From the IMG/VR virus record IMGVR_UViG_3300049001_000044, positions 124,001 to 188,000 of that record: a stretch of 64,000 nt of DNA. One strand, written 5' to 3'. The notes under the pieces were generated by a model that worked only from the letters and a program-made list of their open reading frames with translations, was not told where the DNA came from and ran no database searches. The stretch's first letter is position 1. Each line of letters opens with the position of its first letter. Shown in pieces: positions 38,373-58,589 of the stretch. Position numbers and translations under genes: made by a program.

Positions 38373-38984
38373 TTACTTCAAGCTCTTGATAAAGGGCTCT
38401 ACCTGATCCATGAAGGTACTTTCGTTTTTGTTGAAGATGTAGAACTTTTCGCACTTGATCATGATTTCGCTGTTCGATTTCAAGCACTCTTGGAAGTGAT
38501 CGTTGTGGAACCATGCAGCGTTGTTCATGTCCTGCATTACCAGCGTGATGGCCTTCTCTGTGGCCACATCATAGTCCTGTTCACCATCGCGATTTCTTAC
38601 AACGTCGCGGTGCATCTCCATGTTGCCGGTCAGATCATGGAAGTCCGGGCTGCACAACCATTCAAACTTACCGATCGGAAAAACCACCCCTAGCTGATCA
38701 CCATAAAGTAGAGCGTTGTTGGCGCTGCCAGAAGTGAAGAGACCGTTGCGGAATGGGAACCCAAATTCCTTCTTGAAGAATTCATTGGCGCGATCATGAA
38801 GATCAGTTGGACTGTCACGAGGGCCAGTGCGCTCACGGAACGGGATGATGGCATGGTCAGGTACGTGCTGCGCTGCATGGTGAAGATACCTATCTCCCTT
38901 CAGAGAGAAGTAGTAGGCGCAGTCCTTCTTGAACTGTTCTAAGTTAAGCGGCGCGGACTCTTGGAGGTATTGCTTGAATCTCAT
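38373..38984 (-). CDS. ART-like protein, subfamily B (first Arg motif degenerate)
   Basis: MRFKQYLQE leader; PRDS...FTSGSANNALLYG...FP.G.F...SEIMI. Confidence 0.6.
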   Translation of the reverse strand: MRFKQYLQESAPLNLEQFKKDCAYYFSLKGDRYLHHAAQHVPDHAIIPFRERTGPRDSPTDLHDRANEFFKKEFGFPFRNGLFTSGSANNALLYGDQLGVVFPIGKFEWLCSPDFHDLTGNMEMHRDVVRNRDGEQDYDVATEKAITLVMQDMNNAAWFHNDHFQECLKSNSEIMIKCEKFYIFNKNESTFMDQVEPFIKSLK

Positions 38985-39700
38985 TTGTACCACCCATCGA
39001 TCTTGTGCTTGATAACGTCCGCATCCATTACATCGGAAAGGTACTTCGATTTCTGGCTGCGAATTTTTTCTGCCATGCGCTTGCCAATCGGGTTAGCGAT
39101 TGGAGCGTCGTAGAAATTGGTCATCGATGCGAACGCCTTTCTAAGCACCGCATCGGTTAGCTCACCCTCGTCATTCTTGATCTCGGCGAAGAATGAGCTG
39201 AATTCCTGCTTAAAGAATTCCTTGTTCTCCGCTGACCGCTTGTAGACTTGCTGAATGAATTCGGGATCCACATCGCGCTCTTGACGAGTTGCTGCGCGCT
39301 TAAGCGCCGTTTCAAGTGGTGTGTCAACGAACACCATGCCTACGTCATAGCCCAGCGACTTCAAAATACCAGCACGCTGAAGGATGTTTTCTGCACTGTT
39401 CGATGTACCATCAATAAGCAGTGGCAGCATACCATTCAGATAGTTGCCCAACATGCCTTTCGTGATGCGATGGGTCTGATCTTGGAATGCAATCCAGTTC
39501 ATGCTGTTGACGCGACGACCAGTCTTGAGTGTGAGGTACTCGGTGGCGATGTCGGTGTTGATGACGCGAGGTTGGATCGCACCACTGATTTTCTTCCCAG
39601 TGTACGACTTACCAGAGCCCGGAATGCCGACGACGAAGACAGCTTTGAAAATTCCGCGATCTTCGATTGATTCTGAAATGAACTCTTTGAATGAAACCAT
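38981..39700 (-). CDS. P-loop kinase (zeta-toxin / AAA_33-like) with head-targeting-like leader
   Basis: MVSFKEFISE; VGIPGSGKS, LLIDGT, ALKRAATRQER. Confidence 0.8.
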   Translation of the reverse strand: MVSFKEFISESIEDRGIFKAVFVVGIPGSGKSYTGKKISGAIQPRVINTDIATEYLTLKTGRRVNSMNWIAFQDQTHRITKGMLGNYLNGMLPLLIDGTSNSAENILQRAGILKSLGYDVGMVFVDTPLETALKRAATRQERDVDPEFIQQVYKRSAENKEFFKQEFSSFFAEIKNDEGELTDAVLRKAFASMTNFYDAPIANPIGKRMAEKIRSQKSKYLSDVMDADVIKHKIDGWYK

Positions 39701-39733
39701 GATGTTCTTTTATGATTGGGATACAGGCTCTAT

Positions 39734-41059
39734 TTACTTCATGTGAGACTGAATGTACTCAAGAGCGTCGTCAGTTAGTTCACCCATATTCAGCGAAGGC
39801 CACCGATGGAAGAAGTCTACGAACGCATTCTCAACCTTCCTGTGAACTGCATGGCCGCCCTGTCGAAGAGCATGAACAACGCCCGCAAATAGACGTGCAT
39901 CGATCGCAACACATGGACCGCTGAACCAACACTCAACATTCGTTGGTAGCTTCCGTCCGAACTCAACCATCTTTAAGTTCAGGGTGTCAGGGTGGAACAT
40001 AACAGCGGCAAGAGCTTGAAGTCCCCTTCCCTTATTCTTGCTGAGGATGTCCATCAATTCTTTCTTCGGCGTTTCTTCAAATGCATCGCACCATCTTTCA
40101 GCGAAATCGTCGGTGTTGCTGTCGATGAAGTCGTTGATAGCACTGACGCTGGCCATAGTCATTTGTTTCCCATCGCCAAGTTCCAGCCCGATATCCTCTA
40201 AGAGGTGCTCGAACTCGTCAGAGAACAAATCGACATCAATACCATCAGACCAAGACGTGACGATATCGTTGTGAATGAAGTCATCCACATTACTCACCAC
40301 CACTTTGGTGCCATCGAATGGAACGATGACCATCGGCATACCATAGCTCGCCGCTTCAGCAATGTTAGAAGAGCAGATAAGTGACTTGCTTCGCGATGGA
40401 AAATCCTTCATGCTATCAGAAATGTCCATCATCAACTGGTAGATGTTGTTCGTATCTCTTGAGGTGCGCTCGCCCTGCGATGCGTCGATCGTCATAACTG
40501 CGACGTCATGCTTGAATCCGCGGAAGAGCAGACCACCAGTCGAAATTGCTTGAAGGCCGCGTGAGCAGTGCTTGTTGAGAAGGTCAACAGCTTTCTTCAC
40601 ATCGACATACTCGACGGCCCATGGCTTGACGACCGCCTCAGTGATTGGCTTTGGCTCGCGCTCCATGATGTCGCCTGTGATCTTCTTGAAGCCATTGCGT
40701 TGGTACCATGCCTTGAGCTGTGTCTTGGTTAGATTCTTCCCCTCCCTTCCGCCTGCGTTCTTAAGCGGCTTAACAGTGAGGTCCATCTTCACCTGATGCT
40801 TGTCAGCCAGGTCGGTCAGCCACTTCATGAACTCACGAGCGTTGCCTTGGTTCTTCTCAATCGACATGATGCTACTGATGTGGATCATGCCTTGCCACTT
40901 GCTAATCTCCGCCATCATTTTGTCCTGCCAGATGGCCATACGTGGACTCCAAGGATGCGGGGTCGTTTGTTCATGATACTCTTTCATGAACGCATCGAGG
41001 CCTGGGTTCGCCTTCAAACTTATGCGAACTACCTCTGATAGGAACTGTTTGAATCTCAT
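39734..41059 (-). CDS. GNAT acetyltransferase fused to an ART-like domain
   Basis: QGNAREFM...LKAWYQRNGF (GNAT); LFRG...FPSRSKSLICSS...A..YG...VECWFSG. Confidence 0.7.
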   Translation of the reverse strand: MRFKQFLSEVVRISLKANPGLDAFMKEYHEQTTPHPWSPRMAIWQDKMMAEISKWQGMIHISSIMSIEKNQGNAREFMKWLTDLADKHQVKMDLTVKPLKNAGGREGKNLTKTQLKAWYQRNGFKKITGDIMEREPKPITEAVVKPWAVEYVDVKKAVDLLNKHCSRGLQAISTGGLLFRGFKHDVAVMTIDASQGERTSRDTNNIYQLMMDISDSMKDFPSRSKSLICSSNIAEAASYGMPMVIVPFDGTKVVVSNVDDFIHNDIVTSWSDGIDVDLFSDEFEHLLEDIGLELGDGKQMTMASVSAINDFIDSNTDDFAERWCDAFEETPKKELMDILSKNKGRGLQALAAVMFHPDTLNLKMVEFGRKLPTNVECWFSGPCVAIDARLFAGVVHALRQGGHAVHRKVENAFVDFFHRWPSLNMGELTDDALEYIQSHMK

Positions 41060-41529: not shown

Positions 41530-41540
41530 TTTCTGCTCTC

Positions 41541-42797
41541 TTATTCAAATGGCCATGGGCCCGGTTTTTCGCCGGTTTTTCTCTGTGCTTGGAACTTGGC
41601 GATCTTTTTCTTGATCATTTCCTTGGTGTTCCACAGATCGAAATTTCCTGCTGCGTATCTTGCGAACAGCGCCATGATCTTTTCAAAGGTCTCGTCGCCA
41701 CGTTTGTTGGACATAACCAACTTGTAGTACTTCTTTCGATACTCTTCAACCTCAGCCTTGTTGTCGATGGCCAATGCATATGCTTGCGCGCATCTAGATA
41801 CGGCGTTGATGACCTTGTCTTCCATGGACAGATAGTCACTACCAACGGATCTAAACTCGACGTGACTGCGCTTTAGATTGACTGAGACGTATTTACCCAG
41901 ATCGCGTCTTGATTGTAGCTGGTCAGCGGCGATTCGAGTCACGCCATTACGCATCAACCTCAGTTGCTTCTCAACGAACTCTGGATCGCGGCTAAGTGCG
42001 TCCTTCATGTTCCGGTACATTGACTCGCAGTACCTATTCGTCTCACGACCAAATTCAGCAAGTAGGTGTTCGTCACCCAGGAACAGCACCAGCTTTACCA
42101 TGTCAAGTTTGTTATGACCTTCGCCACTCACGTTAATGTGGAGCCCGCATGACGCGTTCGTCTCTGCGCCATTCTCTTTTAACCACGCGAAGACGTTCTT
42201 CAGAGCAGTTAATCCTTCGCTGATTGAGCTGTAAACAGGGCTAACCATCTCAATGCCAAAGTTGGCCTTTATGCTGTCGTCAGGTTCAAACGTCCACTTG
42301 GTCGATACCTTCGTCGCTTCGTTGTGCTCACCGAAAACAGTTGGCTCTTCTACGTTTAGGTCTTTTGCGAACTTAGCCGCAATCGCTTTAGCAGTGTTGA
42401 TGAACTCAAGGTAGGGGTCATCTGACGCTTCATCGTAACCGTGGGGCAGATCGTACCCGTAAACCTCAGCAAAGTCAGAGAATGAGAAGATGGATTTGCT
42501 GGTCATGTAGGATAAGAAGGTGGTACTAATCTGACCGCGGCTTCCCGCAAGGGATTTCCATCTTTGATAGTCATCATCTAACTTATCGAAGGCGTCATCG
42601 GACATGCTGAAGAAGTTAGCGATGACGTTTGGTGTAATGTCGTAATCAAAGCGCACACCCTTTTTACCAGTGAGTTTCTCAACGTCATCGAAGAATACTT
42701 CCAGTTCGAATCCCACTTGTAGAGGAGATGATGATGCGAAGCTCTTGAGCGCGCTAGGGCTCATCCTAACCTCGTTAAGATAATCTTTGAATTTCAT
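41541..42797 (-). CDS. Putative amidoligase (COOH-NH2 ligase type 2) with head-targeting-like leader
   Basis: GFELE, PDDSI, GIEMVSP, TNASCGLHINVS, KYVSVN, VEFR. Confidence 0.83.
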   Translation of the reverse strand: MKFKDYLNEVRMSPSALKSFASSSPLQVGFELEVFFDDVEKLTGKKGVRFDYDITPNVIANFFSMSDDAFDKLDDDYQRWKSLAGSRGQISTTFLSYMTSKSIFSFSDFAEVYGYDLPHGYDEASDDPYLEFINTAKAIAAKFAKDLNVEEPTVFGEHNEATKVSTKWTFEPDDSIKANFGIEMVSPVYSSISEGLTALKNVFAWLKENGAETNASCGLHINVSGEGHNKLDMVKLVLFLGDEHLLAEFGRETNRYCESMYRNMKDALSRDPEFVEKQLRLMRNGVTRIAADQLQSRRDLGKYVSVNLKRSHVEFRSVGSDYLSMEDKVINAVSRCAQAYALAIDNKAEVEEYRKKYYKLVMSNKRGDETFEKIMALFARYAAGNFDLWNTKEMIKKKIAKFQAQRKTGEKPGPWPFE

Positions 42798-43321
42798 TTC
42801 TTCGCGCCTCTTGTAGTACCGGTAGTCTTTCTAGTACCTGCTGGTTTTTTCGCCTGTTTCGCCTGTTTCTTTGGACCCTGCTTGAAGAGGGACTGTTCAG
42901 TGATGACGCGGAACTTCATGCCGTTCTGACGACAGAAGACCTCAGCGGCTTTCCACTTGGCGATATTTACTGCCAGCGCCATCTTGTCACGATCGCTCTT
43001 TGCCTTTTCAGCCAGCGTCTCTTTCAACGGCTTGACTTCCAACACTTCTTTCTGAATGTTGCCGTCCTTATCCTGATAGACCACGACGAAGTCAGGGAAG
43101 TATCTGGCCGGTTTGAAGCCTGGACGTCCAGTCACAGGGTCAATGACCGGTTTGAGATAAGGAATGACAAGCTCTTCACTACCCCACTTGATGACAGCCT
43201 GTGAACTATCCAGGAACTTCATCATAGCAATTTCCCACGATGAACGGAACATGATGTTCGTTGCATCACCTGCGTATTTCTGCGGATTCTTTGGAACGAA
43301 TCTTCCTTGTGCGAAACCCAT
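42794..43321 (-). CDS. Head completion nuclease (T4 gp4-like)
   Basis: GRFVPKNPQKY, RSSWE, WGSEELVIPY, YFPDF, EVKP. Confidence 0.9.
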   Translation of the reverse strand: MGFAQGRFVPKNPQKYAGDATNIMFRSSWEIAMMKFLDSSQAVIKWGSEELVIPYLKPVIDPVTGRPGFKPARYFPDFVVVYQDKDGNIQKEVLEVKPLKETLAEKAKSDRDKMALAVNIAKWKAAEVFCRQNGMKFRVITEQSLFKQGPKKQAKQAKKPAGTRKTTGTTRGAKK

Positions 43322-44484
43322 TATGCGTATTCTCCATCGTCGCTAGACTCTTGACTTGCCAGCGATTCGACCACGCTTGGTGAGGTGGTGTTGTCAGCTA
43401 AGAAGTTCGTCGATGGTCGAGCGAATGATTGATTTGTTTTTCCTAGTGGATTGACTTTGTTTCCAACCACTGTGTCCTGTACAGAAGATGCACCACCGTC
43501 TGAGATGGTAGTGAAGTTAGGAGTCGCGTAGTCGCGGTACCCCTGATTCAGTGCGCTACCATTTGCGCCACCTTGTGCAGAGCTCCCACCATTACCGTCC
43601 ATCGGAATATCGCCGCCCATAAACAGTGGACCGCCTGTCTCAGTGGTGAAGGCGTTGACGTGATCCATGAAGACAGAGTCGAAGTCAACTGACATCGTGA
43701 TGATGTTGAAGTTGCCGCCGTTCTCATGGTCCATATCGTCGATATCGATGTTGGTGAACTTTGGGTTCATGAAGATGAAGTTCACAACCTTCACCCACGC
43801 CGAAGGAGTCTTTACGTCGCTGTTCCTCTCAACGAAGATTTGGTGGACGGTCATTTCTTCCAAGATGTTCTTCGCATCATTTGGGAGTGGTCCACGCCAT
43901 GCGGTGTTGTTGTCGCTGCCATAATCGAAGCCATAGTCTTCATGCGTCATCGAAGGCATGAACTGTCTGCGAGAGATCGGTTGAATGAGCTGACGGTACA
44001 TGTTGACGAAGCCCAATCCATTATTGCCAACGTCGTCGAAGAATGTCAAGCTAACTTCTCGGTTGCGGATGGACTTCAACACCTTAGTGCGGAAGTTGTA
44101 GAGGTTTACTTCCTCATAGTCGAAGTCGTGTTTAGGACGATCAACGTGGCGAACGATGAAAGTGAGATTCTCTTGGAGCTGCTTCACCGGATAACCCATC
44201 GACTCGGCGTAGGCGATGATAGCTGGGTTGAACTTGAAGCTCACCTTGAACATGAACTTCAGCTTAGGATTGAATGCTACGTTGTTCTTGATCAGATCAT
44301 GAGCGTAGTCAGACGAAATCCATTCCGAAGGAGCGCCTTCTGATTGTGATGCGGTGGATGCTTTGGAGGTCGAGCCAAAAGACATCTTCTTGTCTTGCCC
44401 GCTAACAGCGGCGCCGAATTTGTCAAGCGCGTTCTTCTCCAAATTGACACCCGATGGGATCATTTTTGAAATATCTTTTGGCAC
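43321..44484 (-). CDS. Tail-tube-like baseplate protein (gp48/gp54-like)
   Basis: VDRPK...VNLYNFR...VSLTFFDD tube-fold pattern; late promoter; beside tail tube gene. Confidence 0.55.
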   Translation of the reverse strand: MPKDISKMIPSGVNLEKNALDKFGAAVSGQDKKMSFGSTSKASTASQSEGAPSEWISSDYAHDLIKNNVAFNPKLKFMFKVSFKFNPAIIAYAESMGYPVKQLQENLTFIVRHVDRPKHDFDYEEVNLYNFRTKVLKSIRNREVSLTFFDDVGNNGLGFVNMYRQLIQPISRRQFMPSMTHEDYGFDYGSDNNTAWRGPLPNDAKNILEEMTVHQIFVERNSDVKTPSAWVKVVNFIFMNPKFTNIDIDDMDHENGGNFNIITMSVDFDSVFMDHVNAFTTETGGPLFMGGDIPMDGNGGSSAQGGANGSALNQGYRDYATPNFTTISDGGASSVQDTVVGNKVNPLGKTNQSFARPSTNFLADNTTSPSVVESLASQESSDDGEYA

Positions 44485-44511
44485 GATTATTGTCCAGGTG
44501 GTTGTACGGTT

Positions 44512-44519
44512 TATTTATG
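44512..44519 (-). promoter_or_regulatory. Late promoter motif CATAAATA
   Basis: Directly after a UUCG terminator. Confidence 0.65.
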
Positions 44520-44535
44520 AAGCCGGACGGCGCGC

Positions 44536-44561
44536 AAAAGAAAGGGAGCCCGAAGGCTCCC
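44536..44561 (-). terminator. cUUCGg intrinsic terminator
   Basis: GGGAGCC-TTCG-GGCTCCC then TTTCTTTT. Confidence 0.8.
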
Positions 44562-44579
44562 ACGTTCAGCTAGCTTGTA

Positions 44580-44837: not shown

Positions 44838-44838
44838 A

Positions 44839-45429
44839 TTACAGGTTACCGTTCAGTGCAGTGCCGTATCCAGCACCCATCAGTTCTTGACGTGCGTGGT
44901 CGTAGCGGATGGAAAGGGTGATAGTTGCTGCGTCAGAAGCCGAGTAGTCCAGATCACCGTAGTCCGCAGACACGATGAAGCAGCCTTCAAGACGCCATTC
45001 TTCAACAACACCTTCGTTACCGTCCAGCTGTTGCAGGATAGTACCGAATTTGTAATCAGAACCAGTAGCACCAGCATTCAGCCAGTCGCCTGGAAGATCG
45101 CCACCGATCAGGCGCTGCTGAGTTTCAAGTTGACCTTGAACTGCAGCCGAGGCCAGACCAGTAATGTCGTCTTCGAGGGTCAGAGAGACTGGATCCCAAG
45201 TGTGCTTACCAGCAATGTACGCCACCGAGTTGTAGCGGTGGATTGGAACTTCTTCAAACGAAAGATTCGGGCGAGTGATAGTCGTGGCCTGACGAGTCAG
45301 TTCACGCGAGCTCGCCGATGGAACGAGGCGTGCGAGACCAACGAAGGTCACCTGCCAGCGGTGCTTTTGCTTTGGATGCAGGATACCAAATCCCGCTCCA
45401 GGAATACCCATCTGCGATAGAGTAGCCAT
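44839..45429 (-). CDS. Tail tube protein (gp19-like)
   Basis: RPNLSFEEV...IAGKHTWDPVSLTLED...WRLEGCF...DLDYS...ITLSIRYD. Confidence 0.88.
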   Translation of the reverse strand: MATLSQMGIPGAGFGILHPKQKHRWQVTFVGLARLVPSASSRELTRQATTITRPNLSFEEVPIHRYNSVAYIAGKHTWDPVSLTLEDDITGLASAAVQGQLETQQRLIGGDLPGDWLNAGATGSDYKFGTILQQLDGNEGVVEEWRLEGCFIVSADYGDLDYSASDAATITLSIRYDHARQELMGAGYGTALNGNL

Positions 45430-45486
45430 GTTTTCTCCTTAGTACTAACTAAAAGTGGTGTCAGGTCACCGGTTGTCTACGAGACT

Positions 45487-45494
45487 TATTTATT
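45487..45494 (-). promoter_or_regulatory. Late promoter motif AATAAATA
   Basis: Upstream of tail tube gene. Confidence 0.65.
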
Positions 45495-45531
45495 CAACCC
45501 CGCAGTTTACCGGTGCCGGTTCTTGTGTTAC

Positions 45532-46392
45532 CTAAATCTCATCTGCGCTCTTGATCTGTTTCATCAACCAATCATAGCGCTCTTGACGGTTGAAGTGCGT
45601 ACCTTTCAACCCAGCCTTTTCCATCTCTTCCTGCACCATTGAATATGGGACCATGTAGTATCCGTCAGTGCGATAGAAGAGGATCTCATGACCGCTCTTC
45701 ACAGCTGCTTCCAAGTCTTCATTGTCTAGGTAGAGGGTGTCAAAGGCGTTGTGGAGAGATTGGACCAATTTGCCATAGGCGTTCTTTACCTGAGACCACA
45801 TTGCTGCGGGTGGTTGGTTGGAGATCGTCTGTAGCGTCATATCCTCACCCGCGTCATTACGATTTGCAACCCATGTTGCGGGTGTCATCTCATACGAGAT
45901 GTCTTGGAAAAGTTGACCTATGCTCCCTGCATCGGGCTTTGGAGCGTCATTCATCCTTTTAAACTCTGCCCCGATCTGTTGCATGATCTGTCCTTCTTCA
46001 TCATAGGAGTCAGTGATGTCCGTTGACCATCCATATTTGAAGTCGCCTACTGGGAAAAAGAATCCTAACTCTCCATACTCTGATGTCATGGCGGCGTTGC
46101 CTGACGCGAACACAGTTCTAGTACGCACAGATGGGACCTTGCGGGCAAGCTGATATCCTGCGTTGAAGACAAAGTTGAATGCCTTGCCAGAGTCACGAGG
46201 TGGTCGCTCAGTGGGATGAGGGGTGAACCCTGCTCTCATGTACCGTGCAGACACTCCACGAAAAATTGGAGCAGTGGGGTTGGCGTGCAAGTAGGGCTTG
46301 CATCGATACTTGATGTCCTCGCACACTTGTCGGAAGTTCAGTCCAAGTGCTGGACGATCGTCTTGTTCTAAGATGAAGTCTTTGAATCTCAT
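45532..46392 (-). CDS. ART-like protein, subfamily B
   Basis: MRFKDFILE; IFRG...PRDS...VFASG...YG...FPVGDF...HEIL. Confidence 0.65.
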   Translation of the reverse strand: MRFKDFILEQDDRPALGLNFRQVCEDIKYRCKPYLHANPTAPIFRGVSARYMRAGFTPHPTERPPRDSGKAFNFVFNAGYQLARKVPSVRTRTVFASGNAAMTSEYGELGFFFPVGDFKYGWSTDITDSYDEEGQIMQQIGAEFKRMNDAPKPDAGSIGQLFQDISYEMTPATWVANRNDAGEDMTLQTISNQPPAAMWSQVKNAYGKLVQSLHNAFDTLYLDNEDLEAAVKSGHEILFYRTDGYYMVPYSMVQEEMEKAGLKGTHFNRQERYDWLMKQIKSADEI

Positions 46393-47168
46393 TGGAATAG
46401 CATGCCTTTCAAAGCATTGAATTTGTCTAATGCGGTTTTGCCTGGGATGTCTGACGCTGGAATCATGTAGTAGCCGTCTGACTTGGTGATCATGATCTCG
46501 TTTCCTGATTCGATAGCCCTACCTAGATCATCATTTCGGTAGTAGTCTTGGAATGTTTCCTTACAAGCAGCCACCAGAGCCTCACTGGTCACTCCCAACT
46601 CTTTCTGAATAGTTGCATTAGCCTTACCATTGAGAATGTCTCTGGACCACACTCCCTTGACCCAGAGCTTTTGCCAGACCTCTCGACCCATTCGAATGTC
46701 GTCATTGTCTGTTGGATGTTCCACGTCTGGCTTGAAGCCATGCTGTATCAGATTTCTAACGATGCTGCGGTAGAAGTAGTAGTCAAAATCCAGCACATCG
46801 CCAATAGTGCGTGACCAGTAGAATTCGAACTCACCCTTAGGAAATACGAAGGATAGATCCCCATAGACGCGTGCATTCTTTTCATCACCAGTTGCAAAGA
46901 CCGTCTTAGTCCGAACATCTTGTATGCCGAAGGCAGCAATGAACCCTACGTCAAACATGAAGTTGAAAAGTGGGGTAGTGTCTCTAGGATGGCGATTTGT
47001 TGGGCGCTCATAGTAACCGCGTTGCGCTCCGTGAAAACCACGCATCATACCTTTTCGCTCATGCTCGATTTGAGAGAGGTATGGTTGGCAATCTTTCTTA
47101 ATCTCTGCGACAATCTCTTCCAGGTTTCGGAAGGTTTGGTTCTCTTGTAGGAATGTTTTGAATCTCAT
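46389..47168 (-). CDS. ART-like protein, subfamily B
   Basis: Start moved to MRFKTFLQE; MMRG...PRDT...VFATG...YG...FPKGEF...NEIM. Confidence 0.65.
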   Translation of the reverse strand: MRFKTFLQENQTFRNLEEIVAEIKKDCQPYLSQIEHERKGMMRGFHGAQRGYYERPTNRHPRDTTPLFNFMFDVGFIAAFGIQDVRTKTVFATGDEKNARVYGDLSFVFPKGEFEFYWSRTIGDVLDFDYYFYRSIVRNLIQHGFKPDVEHPTDNDDIRMGREVWQKLWVKGVWSRDILNGKANATIQKELGVTSEALVAACKETFQDYYRNDDLGRAIESGNEIMITKSDGYYMIPASDIPGKTALDKFNALKGMLFQ

Positions 47169-49983: not shown

Positions 49984-50546
49984 GATGAAGCGACCTCTCT
50001 TAATTCTTGAAGTGAAATTACCGATTTTCTTCCCTTCGAGACGTTGTCAAACTTGGGAATAAATCGAAGATTAAAAATGTGGGCTAGTATTTCTGGCTCA
50101 ACACCGTTATCAAATCCGTGCTTGATAGAGTACTTATGATCAAGCTCGTAGCCCTGTCCCCATTTATCATAGTCAGGAAGAGCTGAAAGATCATTCTTTC
50201 TTGAGAGAAATGCAACCCGATTCCTATACTGAATCAACTGTTGTTTGTACTCTTCCGAGGTTTGATATTTCTCACGGAGAGCTTTGCTGATGGCCTGACC
50301 TCTCTTATTTAGATCAACCGATTTGGCAATCTTGCGGCCCCGCTTTTGCAAGCCGCTTACCCCATTCTCGTCGACAGCGGATAAGGTCTCAATGATTTTC
50401 TTCCCATGTTCTTTGAAGTAGTCAGGATTCTTAGCAAGCTTAGCCGCCTTGATCGCCTGACCTCTTCTTTGAAAACCTGTGAGACCGTCTTCTCCAACCT
50501 GAGACATCTTAGCATGCCAGTTAGCTTTGGCCGCAGGGGTTCTCAT
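49980..50546 (-). mobile_element. Free-standing HNH homing-endonuclease-like gene
   Basis: YELDHKYSIKHGF...NLRFIPKFDNVSKG HNH-type C-terminus; basic repeated N-terminus; inside the structural operon. Confidence 0.65.
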
Positions 50547-51058
50547 TTTGGCATCATCCGTTTAATAGTTGGAAGCAGTGATTGCAGGGCGTGGTGAATG
50601 TCGTAGCGATATTTGGTGAAGCGAGACAGACTGTCTTGCCCAGTAGGCCACTTCTGTTCATCACTCCACTTCTTCAGGACCTTCATACCGTCGATGTAGT
50701 CTTCAACGGCCTTTAACACCACCTCACCGTGCTTGTCCATGAACTGTTTCGCCAAGTCGTAGTGCTCATCACGTGGATCATTGTTGAAGTAGATTAGATC
50801 CGGGATCGTAGTGTTGGCTTGGTACTCCTTTGCAATAGGAGCGAGCTCAAGGCGATACCGCTTAAGTGAGTCGTTCATCTTAGCACGCAAGACCACGAGT
50901 TGATCGTCAACGTACTTCTCCAACTCTTCCTGCTTCTGGAAGGCGTTAGGGAGATCATCAGCGATTGACTGAATCTTCTTTCTGAAGTCATCACTGCGCT
51001 TCTTCTTGAAGTCATCGTCTGCGTCGATGACATTCTCAATGAATGGTTTGAATCGCAT
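50543..51058 (-). CDS. Helical protein with MRFKPFIE leader
   Basis: Start moved to ATG 51058; paralogue of next gene (YRLELAP). Confidence 0.72.
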   Translation of the reverse strand: MRFKPFIENVIDADDDFKKKRSDDFRKKIQSIADDLPNAFQKQEELEKYVDDQLVVLRAKMNDSLKRYRLELAPIAKEYQANTTIPDLIYFNNDPRDEHYDLAKQFMDKHGEVVLKAVEDYIDGMKVLKKWSDEQKWPTGQDSLSRFTKYRYDIHHALQSLLPTIKRMMPK

Positions 51059-51579
51059 CACGCACCTCTCATGTCGTTGATTGCACGCTTGACTTGATTG
51101 CGCAGCTCTCTTCTTGCGTGCTTCACCGCATCAAGCCCATGGCGTTCCTTTAAGGTCTGCAGCCAATTGAACAGGTCGTTTAGGCCTTTCTCGTACTCAT
51201 CGACTGCGGCTTTGACTTCAACATAGTGATCCTTCACGAACTTCGTCACGTCTTTATTAGGTGAACCGCTACGATGGGAGTTGTGTGCGATAAGCTGCAT
51301 GATGGTTACGTCAGAATGGAATCCACTGATGACAGGTGCCAGCTCCAACCTATACTTTTTCAGTTTCTTTTCAAACGCGACTTGGAGTTGCTCAATGCGA
51401 TCCTTGACCTTTCCGCGTTCGCGCTGTGCGTGACCGTTAGCGTGAGCTTTTTCCCGCTCTAGCTGTTGAAGGTATCCTTCCGTGTCGAAGTTCCTATCTT
51501 GAGTAGCCTTGGCACGACGCGCCTGGAATTTGTCGCGGGCGTCGATTACCGCCTCTTGAATGAAATCTTTGAATCTCAT
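51058..51579 (-). CDS. Helical protein with MRFKDFIQE leader
   Basis: VIDARDKF...KKYRLELAP shared with the downstream paralogue. Confidence 0.72.
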   Translation of the reverse strand: MRFKDFIQEAVIDARDKFQARRAKATQDRNFDTEGYLQQLEREKAHANGHAQRERGKVKDRIEQLQVAFEKKLKKYRLELAPVISGFHSDVTIMQLIAHNSHRSGSPNKDVTKFVKDHYVEVKAAVDEYEKGLNDLFNWLQTLKERHGLDAVKHARRELRNQVKRAINDMRGA

Positions 51580-53438
51580 ATTGTTTTCTTCCCAATGCTT
51601 TGCTTGGTGGAGGAGTTTAGAATCTGATGCATGGTCGGTTTAGCCGAAGTGTACTCAGTGCGACGATCTTGCTCAATGAAGATCCAACGGTTCTTCACAG
51701 CGCTGAAGCGGTGCAGTCGTGGAGCAATCTTCGTATCAGTTGGATAGTAGAGACGGAAGTATTCACCATCCTTCGACTTCGTTGGGTCAGGGAGTTGGTA
51801 GCCTTCGACGTACGGTTCACCATTCTTTGGTAGACCATCTTCGACATAGGTAGGCGCCCTTGCTTTCATCTTCACTGGCGCTGGTTGACCCTTCGCGTTT
51901 CCAGTAGGAACAGGCGGAGTCATGTGCACCATTTCAATGCTCAGTCCATCATCTGATCCGCGTTCAGGAACCGCTTTCGCTGCCGCCTTCATCGTCTCTT
52001 CGGTTACTTCCAACACAGACTCATCAATGTGACCAGCACCATCAGCAAGGATCGTGTCAGCGGTGAGATACTTCTGAGTGTCGAACGTGCCGAAGATGTC
52101 TCTCGTTTCTTGCGACGGGATTGCCTCTTGAGCTTGGAAGCGGTAGAGCACTGGCTTCCATCCAGTTGTGTAGCCAACAGACGCCCATCCAGTGTCGGTA
52201 ACTTCCAAGAACTTCTTCACAGGACGAAGGTTATGATCGTACTGCATTTCAGGAATGACCTCGATGATGTCACCGGTAACGATAGGGCGACCCATCAGTT
52301 GGACCATCACGGCATATGATACAGTGAACGAGTACTGATCGAGAATGTTCAGACCGAATTTTGACAGATCGGAGATACTGTCGTTCGTGCTATACTGCGC
52401 CTTGATTCGCAGTGGCTGCTTCGCGTAGTCACGGTCCCTGTTCTCTTGGAAGAACAAGTCTTGCACGTTATTGATGTCAGTTGGTGGGCTATCAAGAATG
52501 TCCAGCTCAAGCACTTCCCAGCTATCGGTTCCAGTGAACATCGTTGGTACGACACGAATCGCTTTCACCAACAACTCCGTCTGTAAATTCATCGTGACAG
52601 GAGATACAGACTGGACTAGGTTGAACACGCCCACTCGCTTCCAAACGTAGTTGATTGGGAAGCTAAACATGTCGCCTGTCATAAAGTCCACACCGCCACC
52701 AATCAACGTGAAGTTGACGATTGTGGAGACAAACTGTGAATTTACCGTTGCGACGCCAAGTTGCTTCATAGCACCCACGACCGGCTTCCACATAACTTGG
52801 AAGGACGTTGAGTTGATTGCCACGAGCGTCACTACGCCTGCGACCGGGTTCTGTCCTATTGCTGTTGGTGTGAGCGTGCCATTGCCAAGACCACTGAAAG
52901 TAACCTCACCAAATTCTACCTTACCATCTGCGATCTCAACTCTAACTTGCTTCGCAAAATTGAAGGCAGTGTTACCTTGCTTGATGACGACGGCGCCCAC
53001 CTTTACCCAGTTAGGTTTTGCAGGGCTATTTTCTGGCTCGTTGCCAGGCCGAGCAGTGACGATACCAAAGTCAACACCTACATAGGCTTTTCCTGCTACG
53101 TCACTACCTGCTTGGAAGCTTCGCCATGCACCGTTGTTGATGTTGGAAATTGGGAAGCCAGGTGCTGGGGTCGATGACATCAGCGTGCCTTTAGACAGCA
53201 CACTACCATCACCTTGCTCATGCACACCTAGCAGCTTGTAGATGTTGAGTGGGGCACCATTGATGTTGAGATTCTCTGCAGCGTAGGACTCCTGCAGCGC
53301 TGTTTCATTGCGAGCGCAGAGGTCTTCCTCACCAGAGATTTCCCACTCGCCCATACAAGGATTAGTGGGAACGTACGAAGGTGTATCGTCGTGTTGGGTG
53401 TTTAGGCTACCAGCCGCGTCTTCGCAAGGGTAAGTCAT
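51576..53438 (-). CDS. Neck protein (gp14-like) with large inserted domains
   Basis: N-terminal AENLNINGAPLNIYKLLG; DLFFQENRDRDY, LSKFGL, GDII, FLEVTD. Confidence 0.6.
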   Translation of the reverse strand: MTYPCEDAAGSLNTQHDDTPSYVPTNPCMGEWEISGEEDLCARNETALQESYAAENLNINGAPLNIYKLLGVHEQGDGSVLSKGTLMSSTPAPGFPISNINNGAWRSFQAGSDVAGKAYVGVDFGIVTARPGNEPENSPAKPNWVKVGAVVIKQGNTAFNFAKQVRVEIADGKVEFGEVTFSGLGNGTLTPTAIGQNPVAGVVTLVAINSTSFQVMWKPVVGAMKQLGVATVNSQFVSTIVNFTLIGGGVDFMTGDMFSFPINYVWKRVGVFNLVQSVSPVTMNLQTELLVKAIRVVPTMFTGTDSWEVLELDILDSPPTDINNVQDLFFQENRDRDYAKQPLRIKAQYSTNDSISDLSKFGLNILDQYSFTVSYAVMVQLMGRPIVTGDIIEVIPEMQYDHNLRPVKKFLEVTDTGWASVGYTTGWKPVLYRFQAQEAIPSQETRDIFGTFDTQKYLTADTILADGAGHIDESVLEVTEETMKAAAKAVPERGSDDGLSIEMVHMTPPVPTGNAKGQPAPVKMKARAPTYVEDGLPKNGEPYVEGYQLPDPTKSKDGEYFRLYYPTDTKIAPRLHRFSAVKNRWIFIEQDRRTEYTSAKPTMHQILNSSTKQSIGKKTI

Positions 53439-54277
53439 TTGTATTGCTCTAGGAATTCTTTGAATACGTCTTCACGAATGAAGAGCGCTTTACCTTCTAT
53501 CCAAGCTTCAACGCCTGGCTTCTCAGGGACGGTTGCTTTTGCAGCGATTGCCGTCGTGAGGTTATTTATCGAAGGATCAAGACAGTACTCCAGCAATTCT
53601 TCAAAGTTCGAAAACCCTTTCTTCGCCATCGTGCGAACTGCTGCTTCAATTGACACCACGTCCTGGTGACTGATTTTGACCTTGCCCGCATCGGCCTTCT
53701 CGACTAAGTCGTAAAGCATCTTCATCGTCCATCCACGAAGAGTGCCACGAATTGCTTCAGCGTCGGTGTCAGGGACGATTCCACGGTTAATCAGCTTCAT
53801 CAAGCTCATTAGGAGGCCATTGAGGGAGTTTAGTCCTGGCAAGCCAATCGATTCCTCCAGCACTGGGAATGATTTCCAGATATCGTGCGAGTTGCACTTA
53901 CCAACCTTCGCGTCATCAGCTGGGATCACGTAGAAGATGTCGCCATATCCAGACGCAATGCGATCGGTCGACGCACAAATGTAGGCGCTCTCACGGCTAG
54001 GATATGCTTCCCATTTCTTAGAAGTGGCGATGAACTTCGTGTAGTAGTTGTGAGTGTTCTTACTCACACGTTTGAAGGAGGTGGAGTCACCCAATTGGTA
54101 CTCGCCCTTGGTGCCGTCGACACCGCGCACCAAGTTTAGCTTACCATCTTTTACCCTCTTCATAACCTTAGACGCATTCGCTTTAACCCACTCCACTGCC
54201 TCATTGTAGCTGACAGCTTTTGATGATGGGACTTTTGGAAGAGCAACCTCTTCCATGATGTAGTCTTTAAACCGCAT
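53435..54277 (-). CDS. ART-like protein, subfamily A, tandem copy 6
   Basis: MRFKDYIME; LVRG...YPSRESAYICAS...YG...IPADD...VEAWIEG. Confidence 0.68.
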   Translation of the reverse strand: MRFKDYIMEEVALPKVPSSKAVSYNEAVEWVKANASKVMKRVKDGKLNLVRGVDGTKGEYQLGDSTSFKRVSKNTHNYYTKFIATSKKWEAYPSRESAYICASTDRIASGYGDIFYVIPADDAKVGKCNSHDIWKSFPVLEESIGLPGLNSLNGLLMSLMKLINRGIVPDTDAEAIRGTLRGWTMKMLYDLVEKADAGKVKISHQDVVSIEAAVRTMAKKGFSNFEELLEYCLDPSINNLTTAIAAKATVPEKPGVEAWIEGKALFIREDVFKEFLEQYK

Positions 54278-55109
54278 AGAGTTCTTCTTTCAATTGGTTG
54301 ATTAGTTTATGGGTGTGCGAACCCATGCGATCACTTTCGATGCGGATAAACACGCACTCACCGCGAATCCAAATTTCTCTAGCCTCGTTCACGCCACCGT
54401 AATCACTCGCATCAGTGTGTAAAAACTTGTTCAGGGTAGGGTCGAAAATTCGTTCGAAGAAGGCCTGAAGATCAGAGTCCTTCTTACCCCTCATGTTAAC
54501 GATGACGGCGCGAATCGTGTCTGCTTCATAATCCTGCAAAGTTCCTACCATTTCCCGTAACATGTCGGCAGTAATTTCGCTTAGCTCATTCCTGAACTGG
54601 TCAATGTTGTCAGGGTCCAGCTTGTACTTGTGGTTGGAGAGCAGTCTCACCCATCCAAAGAACTGGTTCAGATCACCAATGTCAGGGAACCCAGTGCCGC
54701 GAAGACCCTCTCTAAAGCTGTACCAGAAATCACCGTCAGGACAAATACCCATGTGTGCGTTGTCGGATGGAATGACGAGGAAGGCCTTACCATACTGCCA
54801 CGCAGTCTGCTCAAACGATGAGCAGATCCATGCTTGATCGCGACGGGGATAATCGCTCCAACGTGGTGATGAAGAGACGAGAGCGTTCGTCTCATTCGAA
54901 GTGAAGGCGGCCTTACGTTTGAACTTGCTGCTGTCGCCGACAGCATAGTCCTGTTGCAGTGGCATGCCACGGAAGATTGCGACGTCAGGATTATCGAATA
55001 GGGCGTTAGTGTACCACTTCGAGTTCTTCCTAATCCAATCGTACGCTTCCTCTTTCGAGATGGCGGTGGATTGAGGTCCACCCTCAGCAAGGTATGCTTT
55101 GAATCTCAC
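54267..55109 (-). CDS. ART-like protein, subfamily A, tandem copy 5
   Basis: MRFKAYLAE; IFRG...YPRRDQAWICSS...YG...DFW...REIWIRG. Confidence 0.68.
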   Translation of the reverse strand: MRFKAYLAEGGPQSTAISKEEAYDWIRKNSKWYTNALFDNPDVAIFRGMPLQQDYAVGDSSKFKRKAAFTSNETNALVSSSPRWSDYPRRDQAWICSSFEQTAWQYGKAFLVIPSDNAHMGICPDGDFWYSFREGLRGTGFPDIGDLNQFFGWVRLLSNHKYKLDPDNIDQFRNELSEITADMLREMVGTLQDYEADTIRAVIVNMRGKKDSDLQAFFERIFDPTLNKFLHTDASDYGGVNEAREIWIRGECVFIRIESDRMGSHTHKLINQLKEELYAV

Positions 55110-55969
55110 AGCTCCAACTCCTTACGCAGGAATTCGATGATGTCGCGATCGCTGTTGCCAGTGACCTTGATGAACGCGGCTTTACCGTTGATCCATACTT
55201 CTCGTCTGCTGTCGACGCCACGATAGTCTTCGCCCTTTGTGTGGATGAATCCATTTGCATTTGGATCGAGTGCTTTTTCCAACCATTCGTCCATGTTGTC
55301 AGCGTGCATTTTCTTCATCGACTCTACAAGAGGTCTAACAATGCGAATGTCTTGCATCGACTCCTTCAACTCTTGCTCGTTATACTTGCTGAGCGAGTGA
55401 CGAAGCTTTGTAGGATTATTCTCTGGCATCGGAGTGGAAGGGGTGTTGAGCTTGTCAATGAATCGATTAACGTCATCGACGTCAAAGAAGCCAGACCCTT
55501 TCAAACCTACCTTGTCAAAGCATGCCCAGAAGTCATACGATGGACAGACACCGATTCGTGCTGTGTCCGCAGGAATGACAAAGTACAGACTACCTTCTGC
55601 ATCAGGATCCTTTGAACTATACCCACGAAATGCATAGAGGTCTGCGCCCGACAGGGAGGTGGAGCAGATGTACGCGCTCTCACGTGGTGGGAACGACTGC
55701 CATTCAGGATAGGTTGGGATGAGCGAGTGAATGTGATTGCTGGTGTTTGCGGCTCTCCTTCTGAAGAGGCGTGAATCACCGATAGCAAAGTCATCAAAGG
55801 AATCACGCATGCCGCGATAGATTCGATTGTTGGTTTTGCTATCATCCAAAATGCTGTGGATTCCTTCCGCTGCATTCTTTTGAATCCAATCTACTATCTC
55901 TGCTGCGTGAGACGTAACGGTGAATGGCTTACGGTATTCTTGCTCTTGTAGGTATGACTTAAACCGCAT
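55106..55969 (-). CDS. ART-like protein, subfamily A, tandem copy 4
   Basis: MRFKSYLQE; IYRG...FPPRESAYICST...DFW...REVWING. Confidence 0.68.
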   Translation of the reverse strand: MRFKSYLQEQEYRKPFTVTSHAAEIVDWIQKNAAEGIHSILDDSKTNNRIYRGMRDSFDDFAIGDSRLFRRRAANTSNHIHSLIPTYPEWQSFPPRESAYICSTSLSGADLYAFRGYSSKDPDAEGSLYFVIPADTARIGVCPSYDFWACFDKVGLKGSGFFDVDDVNRFIDKLNTPSTPMPENNPTKLRHSLSKYNEQELKESMQDIRIVRPLVESMKKMHADNMDEWLEKALDPNANGFIHTKGEDYRGVDSRREVWINGKAAFIKVTGNSDRDIIEFLRKELEL

Positions 55970-56792
55970 CTTTCAAAGTCCTGATAATTTTTTCGATGTT
56001 GTGACCGTCGACCTTGATGAATGCGGCTCTACCTGCAACCCACACTTCACGATCACCAGTACGTTTGTGATAATTAGACGCCGTGGTCTGTGAGAACTTA
56101 TTTAGCTCGGGGCCAAGGACGATCTCAAGCAGGTCGTCCATGTTATCGACATCCAGATTATTCATCGCATCAACGACGGCAGTGTGGTAGACTTTCTTCA
56201 TCACATCCTTCGTCCATGATCGAAGCACATCATGCAGCTTCTCTGAATCGGTCTCAGGAAGATGGACATTCAGAGTTTCAGCGGTGGTGGTGAGGAAGGT
56301 GTTCAGGTCTGCAACGTCATTGATGTTCCAAAGGTCAGCATGAGCTAGACCTCTTTCGAACGATGGCCAGAAGTCATCACGTGGGCAGATGCCGATGTGG
56401 GCGTTATCTGCTGGGATGACTAGGAATGGATCGTAGCGTGATGAGTATTTAGCAGCAGTGTGCAAGTTGTCGGCGCAGATGTATGCGCTCTCACGACTAG
56501 GATAGTTCTTCCATCGTGGCGAAGTGGCAATGAATGAGTTGACGAAGTTTTTGGTGTTAGCCGACTTCCTCTTGAACATAGCCGAGTTACCCACTGCATA
56601 TTGAGTATCAGACGGCACGCCTCTCACGATGTAGTTGTCAGCACTTAACACATTCGTGATGTAGTGGGAGGCATGACGCTTGCACCACTCCCTAAATGGG
56701 CCGATAGGGATAGGAGCGATGACTGGTTTGTCGCTCATCCCGGCTCCTAGCACGTGGAAGTCCGACTCATTAATGAATTGCTTAAAGCGCAT
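55959..56792 (-). CDS. ART-like protein, subfamily A, tandem copy 3
   Basis: MRFKQFINE; IVRG...YPSRESAYICAD...DFW...REVWVAG. Confidence 0.68.
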   Translation of the reverse strand: MRFKQFINESDFHVLGAGMSDKPVIAPIPIGPFREWCKRHASHYITNVLSADNYIVRGVPSDTQYAVGNSAMFKRKSANTKNFVNSFIATSPRWKNYPSRESAYICADNLHTAAKYSSRYDPFLVIPADNAHIGICPRDDFWPSFERGLAHADLWNINDVADLNTFLTTTAETLNVHLPETDSEKLHDVLRSWTKDVMKKVYHTAVVDAMNNLDVDNMDDLLEIVLGPELNKFSQTTASNYHKRTGDREVWVAGRAAFIKVDGHNIEKIIRTLKDAV

Positions 56793-57687
56793 TCAGCCAC
56801 TCCCTTACTTTTTTCTCTGCTGATTCGTAATCATATTCGTCGACAAATTCACTGATCGAGATGAACGCACATGTGCCGCCAATCCATACTTCATGATCAC
56901 CTTCCACATGGAAGGTCTCGCCCTTAGTGTGAGTGAAACCAGAAGCGGCTGGATCCAGTAGGCCTTCTAAGAACGTTAGCATGGACTCACGATAGTCCAT
57001 CTTCTCGGCGATCATCTTAATCCTTCTACTGTACTCGTTATGGAAGTCGACATGAATCTTGTCCGACATGTCATGAAAGTCTTTGTTAGTATCAGGGTGA
57101 TCACCAATCATGTCTTCCAAGTCTTCACGCCAAATGCTTCTCAAAATCCTGGTAAGTTCTGCGTAGTCAGTGCTGTTGTCAATTGGTTCACCAAATCGTT
57201 GGCATATGGCGCTCAAGACTTCGTTCATCATCTCAACACCGCCACCTTTGAACATTTTATCGAACTCTTTGAAGCCGCACCAGAAGTCGAAAGCTGGAAC
57301 AACGCCAATTCCCGCATCGTCAGCAGGAATTACCAGGTAGGGGTCACCAAAGTTGTTCGCGTTATCTAGGTCAGTAGTGCATATGTAGGCGCTCTCACGC
57401 TTAGGATAGTCTTTCCATTTAGAAGAGCGGGAAACCAACAAGTTGATGAAGTTGGAAGTGTTTGCCGCCTTTCGAACGAATTTGCTCGTATCGCCTAGAC
57501 CGTATGGGTGATCTTCCCTACCCATTGAAAGACCACGCCAAATAATTGGACCACCACGAAGCAGACCAGCAACATGCGCCTTGCTATGCTGCTTAATCCA
57601 CTCAACCACTTCTTCCTTTGATGTTGGAGAAGCATGCGGGTAGCTGTACTTCTCCTCTTGTTCCTTTAGGTAATCTTTGAATCTCAT
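56782..57687 (-). CDS. ART-like protein, subfamily A, tandem copy 2
   Basis: MRFKDYLKE; IWRG...YPKRESAYICTT...FG...DFW...HEVWIGG. Confidence 0.68.
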   Translation of the reverse strand: MRFKDYLKEQEEKYSYPHASPTSKEEVVEWIKQHSKAHVAGLLRGGPIIWRGLSMGREDHPYGLGDTSKFVRKAANTSNFINLLVSRSSKWKDYPKRESAYICTTDLDNANNFGDPYLVIPADDAGIGVVPAFDFWCGFKEFDKMFKGGGVEMMNEVLSAICQRFGEPIDNSTDYAELTRILRSIWREDLEDMIGDHPDTNKDFHDMSDKIHVDFHNEYSRRIKMIAEKMDYRESMLTFLEGLLDPAASGFTHTKGETFHVEGDHEVWIGGTCAFISISEFVDEYDYESAEKKVREWLNAL

Positions 57688-58589
57688 TCTAACTCTTCTA
57701 CCCAGTCAAGTGGGTTATCGGCGTGGCCGATAACTGCTACCTCACCATGCACCCACACCTCATGGTCTCCATGAATGTCGAACTCTCTTCCATTTAAGAC
57801 TTGGAATTTGTTCGTGTATGGATCCATCGACTTGGACAGCCATTCATACAGGCTGTCTCCCATGTTCGGGCTCTGCAGGATGGTTTCACGGATGATTTTC
57901 GCCCAACGCTGGTTGTAATCGCGGGTGTGGTCAGGATGGTCGTTGTCGAACCCTTCCAACTGATTTACGAAATCGTGAAGCTTCTCGGTGGTCACATCGC
58001 TCAACACCCTTCTCATCTCGTCAAAGGTCATCTTCTGCTCATCTAACTTCAGATTCATTTCTTCTTTGATGAACTCCAGCATCGTGTTGATGGAGTCGAC
58101 GTTCTTGTGTCTGCGCTTTAGGAACGAAAAGCTGTCCCAAAAATCTGACTCAGTGCAGATTCCGATTTGCGCGCTGTCGGCAGGAATGATTAGTGCAAGG
58201 TCACCATACTGTTCCGCCTTGTGCTCGTTCGTCGTGCAGATGTATGAAGACGAACGAGGTGGGAACCGCTTCCATGCTGCGTCATTGCTCACCAACAAGT
58301 TGATGTAATTGGCAGTATAGGCTGCACGACGCTTGAGCGATCTCGAATCACCAATCAAGTACGGTGCCTCTGCCGTGAATCCACGATAGATCGGTGATGC
58401 GCTGCCATCCTTCAGCTTCTGAATGTAGCGAGAGGCGTTCTTCTTAATCCACTCCTTAACCTCATGCTCTTCGACCCGCCGCATGTTTTGAAAGTTTGGG
58501 GTGGAGATCGTCTCCTCATCGTCGTCCCATGGAAAAGTCGGTTCACCGTTGTTTCGATATTGCTCTTTGATGTAGTCTTTGAATCTCAT
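57684..58589 (-). CDS. ART-like protein, subfamily A, tandem copy 1
   Basis: MRFKDYIKE; IYRG...FPPRSSSYICTT...YG...DFW...HEVWVHG. Confidence 0.68.
   Translation of the reverse strand: MRFKDYIKEQYRNNGEPTFPWDDDEETISTPNFQNMRRVEEHEVKEWIKKNASRYIQKLKDGSASPIYRGFTAEAPYLIGDSRSLKRRAAYTANYINLLVSNDAAWKRFPPRSSSYICTTNEHKAEQYGDLALIIPADSAQIGICTESDFWDSFSFLKRRHKNVDSINTMLEFIKEEMNLKLDEQKMTFDEMRRVLSDVTTEKLHDFVNQLEGFDNDHPDHTRDYNQRWAKIIRETILQSPNMGDSLYEWLSKSMDPYTNKFQVLNGREFDIHGDHEVWVHGEVAVIGHADNPLDWVEELE

Follow-up and report, generated by a model that had tools for sequence, protein, structure and literature searches.

The question raised by this locus is what a phage does with ten related genes lodged in its neck and tail operon, six of them in tandem. 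The window, that is, the whole stretch of 64,000 nucleotides analysed here, covers positions 124001-188000 of the 343,229-bp metagenomic viral contig IMGVR_UViG_3300049001_000044 (JGI 3300049001), and its homologues of gp13, gp15, gp18, gp19, gp4 and gp17 identify the source, by gene content, as a T4-superfamily jumbo phage. The minus strand carries the genes from 35 to 62 kb, which together make up a T4-type structural (neck/tail) module. All ten open reading frames (ORFs) in question, which divide into subfamilies A and B, were found on that strand at the places given by a sequence-only reading of the same DNA, which had taken their products for virion-borne, diversified ADP-ribosyltransferases (ARTs). 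The account favoured in the present study, at a probability of about 0.7, is that they are cargo carried inside the head of a T4-like jumbo phage and directed into the prohead by a T4-type capsid-targeting leader; we infer docking, cleavage, ejection and enzymatic activity. Among cultured phages, Ralstonia phage RsoM2USA stands nearest (54% amino-acid identity of the sheath), and the DNA of the array found no match by megablast among 50,697 phage records.

The feature on which this account turns had been overlooked in the sequence-only reading. It is an N-terminal leader of 9-10 residues, the most conserved segment of these proteins, with 70% identity among the six tandem paralogues as against 41% for the core. 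In all ten A/B proteins it runs Met, Arg, Phe, Lys, any residue, Tyr/Phe, Leu/Ile, any residue, Glu. It also heads four ORFs outside the family, encoding an amidoligase, a P-loop kinase and two proteins of 171-173 amino acids (aa), designated family C, and so is found on at least four unrelated families (A/B, Amidoligase_2, AAA_33/Zeta_toxin and family C). The pattern aromatic-x-x-aromatic-(L/I) is present in 14/14 of the leader ORFs, and Glu follows two residues after L/I in 13/14. A relaxed form of the leader pattern was matched by 15 of the 30 genes in the 35-62 kb region and by one of the 65 in the rest of the window (Fisher p=2e-8). The codons for Arg, Phe, Lys and Leu/Ile vary freely within the leader and the flanking DNA is only 26-29% identical. 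Since synonymous positions are free to vary and the flanks are unrelated, a DNA repeat or gene conversion as the source of the identity could be ruled out, and the leader must be conserved as a peptide. It is also common beyond this phage: it occurs, with its Glu at 9 or 10, within the N-terminal 16 residues of 89 of 148 metagenome representatives of the family, against a background of 42 matches in 2302 internal windows of 16 residues (1.8%). Agrobacterium phage Atu_ph07 and two further relatives, L002 and L004, each have their own version, common to their cargo genes. In the AlphaFold model of family A paralogue 4 (numbering as in Table 1), the leader is disordered (residues 2-15) and is followed by a poorly conserved linker.

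The leader can be compared directly with that of T4, in which the capsid-targeting sequence (CTS) comprises the first 10 residues of internal protein IPIII; targeting depends on residues 4 and 7 and processing on residues 8 and 10, and the prohead protease gp21 cuts after L/I-x-E (PMC9026906). In the N-termini of T4 IPII and IPIII (NC_000866), position 4 is aromatic, and positions 7, 8 and 10 are Phe, Ile and Glu. The leader of the window kinase has exactly the same four functional residues, while the nine-residue leaders of the window keep the same four positions with one residue fewer near the start. The leaders of L002 and L004 are ten-residue versions that come still closer to T4. This correspondence of residues supports the assignment of the window leader as a T4-type capsid-targeting sequence at the four functional positions, ending in an L/I-x-E protease site. 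Proteases of the appropriate kind are encoded by relatives: ORF379 of RsoM2USA matches Peptidase_S77 (E 4.8e-24) and lies beside portal and gp23-type capsid genes, and gp204 of Atu_ph07 has been reported as a homologue of T4 gp21 (PMC6102473).

The evidence of virion association comes from homologues in Atu_ph07. This phage carries an array of thirteen genes (gp53-65), of which gp53-gp63 are eleven A- or B-type members, as recognised by a hidden Markov model (HMM), with their own leader; the gp numbering was fixed through calculated masses, which agree with the published table to 0.01 kDa. All thirteen array proteins, including the eleven members, were detected in purified virions by electrospray ionisation tandem mass spectrometry (ESI-MS/MS), with 3-31 unique peptides (PMC6102473, Table S5). 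The earlier proposal that the family is virion-borne is thus supported both by the T4-type leader and by the presence of the homologues gp53-gp63 in purified particles, and a description of the proteins as virion-borne, probably ejected and diversified is well supported, with ejection argued by analogy. The protein gp53 (778 aa; L001 10975-13311) consists of a family-A domain, then a Zeta/AAA_33-type kinase homologous to the window kinase, and finally about 300 residues without assignment; no internal leader-like cleavage site was found in the two-domain proteins gp53 and gp54.

The paralogy itself proved to be much as the sequence-only reading had described it. The six tandem genes share 28-34% identity (BLASTP E 1e-32 to 1e-52), and a seventh copy of the A domain forms the C-terminal part (about residues 160-408) of the longer paralogue 7, which matches the tandem six with BLASTP E 1e-6 to 1e-15 and the family HMM with E 1e-47. 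The three subfamily B genes (beginning at 38373, 45532 and 46389) were likewise borne out, with mutual BLASTP E values of 4e-5 to 7e-31. In the first and last of these an internal Met codon is the likely start, placing their ends at 38984 and 47168. Two results allow A and B to be regarded as one superfamily. The A profile recognises proteins of subfamily B across roughly the initial 120 positions of the core, with E values of 2e-6 and 2e-8 for those of the window and as low as 1e-11 for those of relatives, and a joint alignment of A and B brings every motif into register. The family is a large one. A word-indexed protein search with one paralogue returned only three matches, and family size was taken from a full HMM scan (E<=0.001) of 1.84 billion representatives, which gave 3,939 clusters at 50% identity. 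The source names encountered for family members were all 'hypothetical protein', no function is assigned to A, B or family C proteins by Pfam, PHROGs or NCBIfam, and full-text literature searches turned up no paper on the A/B family, nor on a CTS-type tag in this jumbo phage clade. The arrays are syntenic in relatives and differ in copy number, which on comparison varies from 3 to 11: three members in the array of RsoM2USA, eight in the stretch of L002 that was analysed, ten in the corresponding stretch of L004 and in the window (7 A and 3 B), and eleven in Atu_ph07.

Conservation within the domain was assessed over 136 family members, at a mean column identity of 19%, with residues numbered as in family A paralogue 4. 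R75, R100, D140 and E249 are invariant in 136/136, and R57, G58, T80, N82, W94, P98, I105, C106, G117, P127, D129, W142, F145, P228 and W251 are conserved in at least 90%. For the A/B domain as a whole, the invariant Arg, Arg, Asp and Glu are accompanied by Arg-Gly, Thr-x-Asn, Cys or Ser/Thr, and Asp. The motifs seen by eye in the ten ORFs correspond to real conserved columns of this alignment. The supposed loss of the first Arg from the ORF at 38373 was a misreading: it is the Gly of the R-G pair that is missing, and an Arg stands in or beside that column. The stretch from D-F-W to the last Glu, said at the outset to be highly variable, is a hypervariable helical insert with a mean pairwise identity of 20%, compared with 41% in the N-terminal core. 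All seven A copies of the window retain every conserved polar residue while the insert diverges, which bears out the description of the set as diversified.

From these observations a course of events can be proposed. The cargo proteins would be made late, from within the neck/tail operon, and the disordered leader (aromatic-x-x-aromatic-(L/I)-x-Glu, with Glu at 9 or 10) would dock each of them on the scaffolding core. As in T4, a gp21-type prohead protease would then take off the leader after L/I-x-E, and the mature proteins (about 22-48 kDa, mostly acidic) would remain beside the DNA inside the head and be ejected together with it upon infection. In the most likely reading, the A/B domain would perform one conserved chemistry on a phosphate-bearing ligand, with the insert directing each copy to a different host target. 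The invariant set of Arg, Arg, Asp and Glu, together with the kinase fusion in Atu_ph07 gp53, suggests an enzyme acting on such a ligand, and the hypervariable insert and variable copy number suggest different targets. The same leader would also deliver the amidoligase, the Zeta/AAA_33-type kinase and two small proteins, so that the module may encode a whole injected toolkit.

Several points weigh against this account. Detection in virions rests on the homologues of Atu_ph07 rather than on particles of this phage, and that proteome demonstrates association with the virion, not a location inside the head. Cleavage and ejection of the window cargo are argued by analogy with T4. The cargo genes lie in the neck/tail operon and not with head genes, and no prohead protease gene of this phage came to light within the window or the adjoining 10 kb; pattern scans for that gene, run twice on viral contigs, matched other phages only. 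Subfamily B lacks the near-invariant Cys of subfamily A, and the invariant charged residues could have a packaging or folding role instead of a catalytic one.

It may be added that some of the ORFs adjoining gp21-type protease genes in unrelated viral contigs (L026 3404-4531; L048, L050 9545-9880) carry the same leader types, and these three examples suggest that the leader tag is widespread next to head genes.

The identity proposed originally, an ART, could be examined on predicted structures as well as sequences. AlphaFold models of family A paralogue 4 and of family B paralogue 1, which has a short insert, were confident (predicted local distance difference test scores, pLDDT, of 92.3 and 87.5; predicted template modelling scores, pTM, of 0.87 and 0.81), and both are compact globular alpha+beta domains. 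Foldseek searches of 350,542 PDB chains with both models gave nothing at E<=0.001 (best E 0.43 for the first and 0.2 for the second), and there was no ART in the 34 listed PDB matches of the first model or the best 50 of 131 of the second, although very diverged ARTs may escape Foldseek. Among the predicted viral structures of BFVD the first model matched nothing beyond its own uncharacterised family, B-type proteins of Atu_ph07 among them, save for three ART-PolyVal-like proteins in the non-significant tail (E 0.35, 1.7 and 3.3, probability <=0.04). A Pfam search of the ten proteins and the 136 members found no ART family and no recurrent family of any kind, NCBIfam gave no ART family and no match, and profile searches of PDB sequences yielded only helical-bundle noise in the variable insert and no ART. 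In hhalign comparisons with eight ModA/ModB-type ARTs from the phage collection, the family profile reached 3.4% probability and the A+B profile 8% (Mod-type comparisons overall 2-8%); the result against ModA/ModB alone was not significant, and that against T4 Alt was 0.2%.

An ART identity is accordingly not supported by any of these routes (Pfam, NCBIfam, PDB profiles, Foldseek and hhalign), and the expectation that the predicted structures would be ART-like fails at the sensitivity of Foldseek. The order of motifs and strands is nevertheless compatible with an ART. R57-G58, followed by I-C-(S/T)-(S/T) or F-(A/T)-(S/T)-G and then by E249, stand in R-S-E order on matching predicted strands, in a layout that resembles an ART core: aromatic-Arg-Gly at a strand end, (I/F)-(C/A/T)-(S/T) at a strand end with a helix, two strands, the insert, and a Glu opening a late strand. 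ModA and ModB have the aromatic-Arg-Gly, Ser/Thr motif and late Glu in the same order, and the sole local alignment that hhalign made with Mod-type ARTs sets the Tyr-Arg-Gly of the family on their invariant Arg-Gly. T4 Alt, too, is a leader-bearing, head-packaged and injected enzyme, head-packaged ARTs are common in myoviruses (PMC9503650), and there are the three proteins in the BFVD tail. Yet significant similarity to Alt, ModA or ModB is lacking in sequence, profile and fold. The A/B family has no conserved Q/E two residues before its Glu, hence no Q/E-x-E, and its further invariant residues R75, R100 and D140 fall outside the R-S-E triad. That the domain is a highly diverged R-S-E (cholera-toxin-like) ART, each paralogue modifying a different host target after injection, is therefore judged improbable. 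Readings of the domain as a PD-(D/E)xK nuclease, a papain-like or transglutaminase fold, a RES domain or a PTP were also considered by motif and were rejected, on comparison of their signatures with the conserved columns, for the lack of a conserved His, the lack of E-x-K and the wrong order of residues.

In our ranking the main rival of the favoured account is that the A/B proteins are non-enzymatic: either bulk core or packing material of the head, or injected stoichiometric inhibitors of host defence like T4 IPI*, with the core serving folding or packaging and the insert acting as a binding surface. This would fit the internal proteins of T-even phages, a diverse anti-restriction set with only the CTS in common (PMC3012670), as well as the head ejection proteins without known function that make up large families of paralogues in giant phages such as SPN3US and phiKZ (PMC5694885), and it would sit well with the hypervariable insert, the differing copy number between relatives and a fold for which Foldseek finds no enzyme neighbour. 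What speaks against it is the pattern of conservation, in which four invariant and about 15 near-invariant positions, occupied for the most part by Arg, Asp, Glu, Thr, Asn and Cys, have the appearance of an active site or ligand site, as well as the kinase fusion of Atu_ph07 gp53, which suggests an enzymatic context. The mature cargo proteins are mostly acidic (isoelectric point 5-6.4), on which ground histone-like proteins that condense or pack DNA were rejected. On balance a non-enzymatic role is possible but rather unlikely. A different suggestion, that the proteins are structural and belong to the neck, collar, whiskers or tail, would account for the position of the genes inside the neck/tail operon, between gp13-type and gp15-type genes and between sheath and tube; Atu_ph07, moreover, has hair-like fibres and many virion proteins without assignment. 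It is hard to reconcile, however, with a leader that matches a head-targeting signal, ends in a prohead protease site and is also found on enzymes (kinase, amidoligase), with models that are compact globular alpha+beta domains and not fibres, and with the Atu_ph07 array (gp53-65), which lies far from the neck genes of that phage (gp140, gp143). The probability of a structural role is very low indeed.

Packaging of cargo by means of a shared leader, the account preferred here, has precedents. T4 carries a short leader on its otherwise unrelated cargo (IPI, IPII, IPIII and Alt), with aromatics at the targeting positions and L/I and Glu at the processing positions; both phages have T4-superfamily structural genes, and homologues of the window cargo are present in virions. 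The differences are that at least 14 tagged genes lie in one 27-kb module here, as opposed to a handful in T4, that most window leaders are one residue shorter, that the window cargo is of 20-50 kDa and mostly acidic whereas T4 internal proteins are small and basic, and that its genes are embedded in the neck/tail operon, with cleavage and ejection taken over from the T4 model. In SPN3US, families A and B, like the inner-body proteins of phiKZ (PF12699), have identical or near-identical N-terminal propeptides that are cleaved after Glu by a gp21-related protease (PMC5694885). Those systems resemble the present one in having multi-copy paralogue families of head proteins with identical or near-identical propeptides and copy numbers that vary between relatives, but the window phage belongs to T4-like group 2.2 and is not phiKZ-like, and its leader ends in L/I-x-E, not A/S-x-E. 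No match to PF12699 or any other Pfam family was obtained with the 136 family members at E<=0.1. Polyvalent proteins and MuF-fused effectors are batteries of enzymatic domains that are packaged in the head and injected early (PMC5512222, PMC9503650). The concept of a packaged and injected enzymatic battery is the same, but in the window each domain is a small protein by itself and has its own leader, with no joining into one giant polypeptide or to MuF. The polyvalent batteries described by Iyer et al. in 2017 reportedly include kinase, amidoligase and ART domains.

A common targeting tag on diverse injected proteins is thus already known from T4 and, in another form, from SPN3US and phiKZ. 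The novelty lies in how many genes are tagged, in their location within the neck/tail operon, in the tagging of an amidoligase and a kinase, and in the main cargo family itself. The proteins that jumbo phages inject alongside their DNA are largely unknown, and a T4-type tag on at least 14 genes of one module offers a sequence-only listing of candidates in this clade; if the account is right, the leader could serve as a sequence tag by which the whole injected proteome of such phages is read from genomes alone. The main cargo family is very large in metagenomes, without annotation or structural neighbour, and keeps enzyme-like residues while its helical insert diversifies. A conserved core with a diversifying insert is the pattern expected of host-targeting effectors or anti-defence proteins. 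It might even be speculated, at somewhat less than even odds, that a large and hitherto unrecognised superfamily of injected phage enzymes, of about 4,000 clusters at 50% identity, is founded by the A/B domain: its fold would be new, its chemistry would either belong to a very deep branch of the ARTs or be of a kind so far undescribed, and T4-like jumbo phages would deliver it in arrays via the leader. At the least, a tempting motif-based ART call is corrected. The features of the region are collected in Table 1.

Table 1. Genes of the leader-rich module and its surroundings in the window (coordinates are window positions)
Feature	Position	Strand	Basis and remarks
T4 gp13-type neck protein	58592-60445	-	PF26809 Phage_T4_gp13; phrog_211; immediately upstream of the six-gene array
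Family A paralogue 6 (301 aa, leader)	57684-58589	-	BLASTP, HMM; phrog_12810, unknown function
Family A paralogue 5 (301 aa, leader)	56782-57687	-	BLASTP, HMM
Family A paralogue 4 (277 aa, leader)	55959-56792	-	BLASTP, HMM; first AlphaFold model
Family A paralogue 3 (287 aa, leader)	55106-55969	-	BLASTP, HMM
Family A paralogue 2 (280 aa, GTG start, leader)	54267-55109	-	BLASTP, HMM
Family A paralogue 1 (280 aa, leader)	53435-54277	-	BLASTP, HMM
Family C protein 1 (173 aa, same leader, unrelated to A/B)	51058-51579	-	Paralogue of 50543-51058 (29% identity, E 4e-13); no family match
Family C protein 2 (171 aa from second codon, leader one residue shorter)	50543-51058	-	Paralogue of 51058-51579
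gp15-type sheath stabiliser	49234-49983	-	phrog_227 E 1.4e-31
Tail sheath	47262-49121	-	phrog_10581 E 4e-157
Family B paralogue 3 (259 aa from leader Met)	46389-47168	-	BLASTP, HMM; phrog_11975; between sheath and tube genes
Family B paralogue 2 (286 aa, leader)	45532-46392	-	BLASTP, HMM
Tail tube (196 aa)	44839-45429	-	
gp4-type head completion protein	42794-43321	-	
Putative amidoligase (418 aa, leader with Lys at position 2)	41541-42797	-	PF12224 Amidoligase_2 E 1.2e-10
Family A paralogue 7 (441 aa): leader, ~150-aa domain without match, A domain (about residues 160-408)	39734-41059	-	BLASTP, HMM
P-loop kinase (239 aa, ten-residue T4-format leader)	38981-39700	-	PF13671 AAA_33 E 1.3e-11; PF06414 Zeta_toxin E 4.4e-10
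Family B paralogue 1 (203 aa from leader Met, short insert)	38373-38984	-	BLASTP, HMM, joint alignment; second AlphaFold model
ORF, 218 aa, candidate second-class leader	37673-38329	-	N-terminus; tentative
ORF, 90 aa, without leader	37401-37673	-	Between 36914-37372 and 37673-38329
ORF, 152 aa, candidate second-class leader	36914-37372	-	Passes relaxed leader pattern; tentative
Large terminase	35259-36827	-	phrog_36964 E 2e-67; low-coordinate end of the leader-rich module

Among the other tagged genes, the amidoligase has no PDB relative by sequence, and its leader suggests an injected ligase. The extra N-terminal domain of family A paralogue 7 (residues 1-160) found no match in any search. 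A resemblance by eye to a GNAT acetyltransferase led to such a reading of this domain, which no search supports and which was dropped; the L002 homologue of this paralogue, P0165, has a weak, sub-threshold GNAT acetyltransferase match at its C-terminus instead. The candidate second-class leader of the ORFs at 36914 and 37673 resembles the N-terminus of T4 Alt (NC_000866) in its pattern of residues. None of the three ORFs of 36914-38329 gave a family match, and the product of 37673-38329 shares 40% identity over ~77 residues with internal segments of a 1453-aa protein of L002 and an 810-aa protein of L004. Far from the module, the ORF at 10475-11080 on the plus strand (201 aa) has an Atu_ph07-type leader-like N-terminus and is the sole match among the 65 genes outside 35-62 kb; its product may be a further head-targeted protein encoded elsewhere in the genome.

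The remaining observations concern the genomic setting. The product of 61318-61782 (minus strand, 154 aa) has a weak large-terminase match (phrog_5989, E 3.5e-6) 25 kb from the full-length terminase, and Atu_ph07 likewise has two gp17 matches. Close to the tube gene, 43321-44484 (minus strand, 387 aa) encodes a product whose match is tail-tube-like (phrog_4542, E 8e-10) and which may be a paralogue of the tube protein or otherwise related to it. Directly upstream of the gp13-type neck gene and within the late structural region, the minus-strand ORF 60479-61321 specifies an NAD-dependent sugar epimerase (PF01370). The region 12026-22520, also on the minus strand, is a block for replication and nucleotide metabolism, with class Ia ribonucleotide reductase subunits, a helicase, a UvsX-type recombinase and a gp32-type single-stranded DNA-binding protein, and is ordinary for a T4-like jumbo phage.

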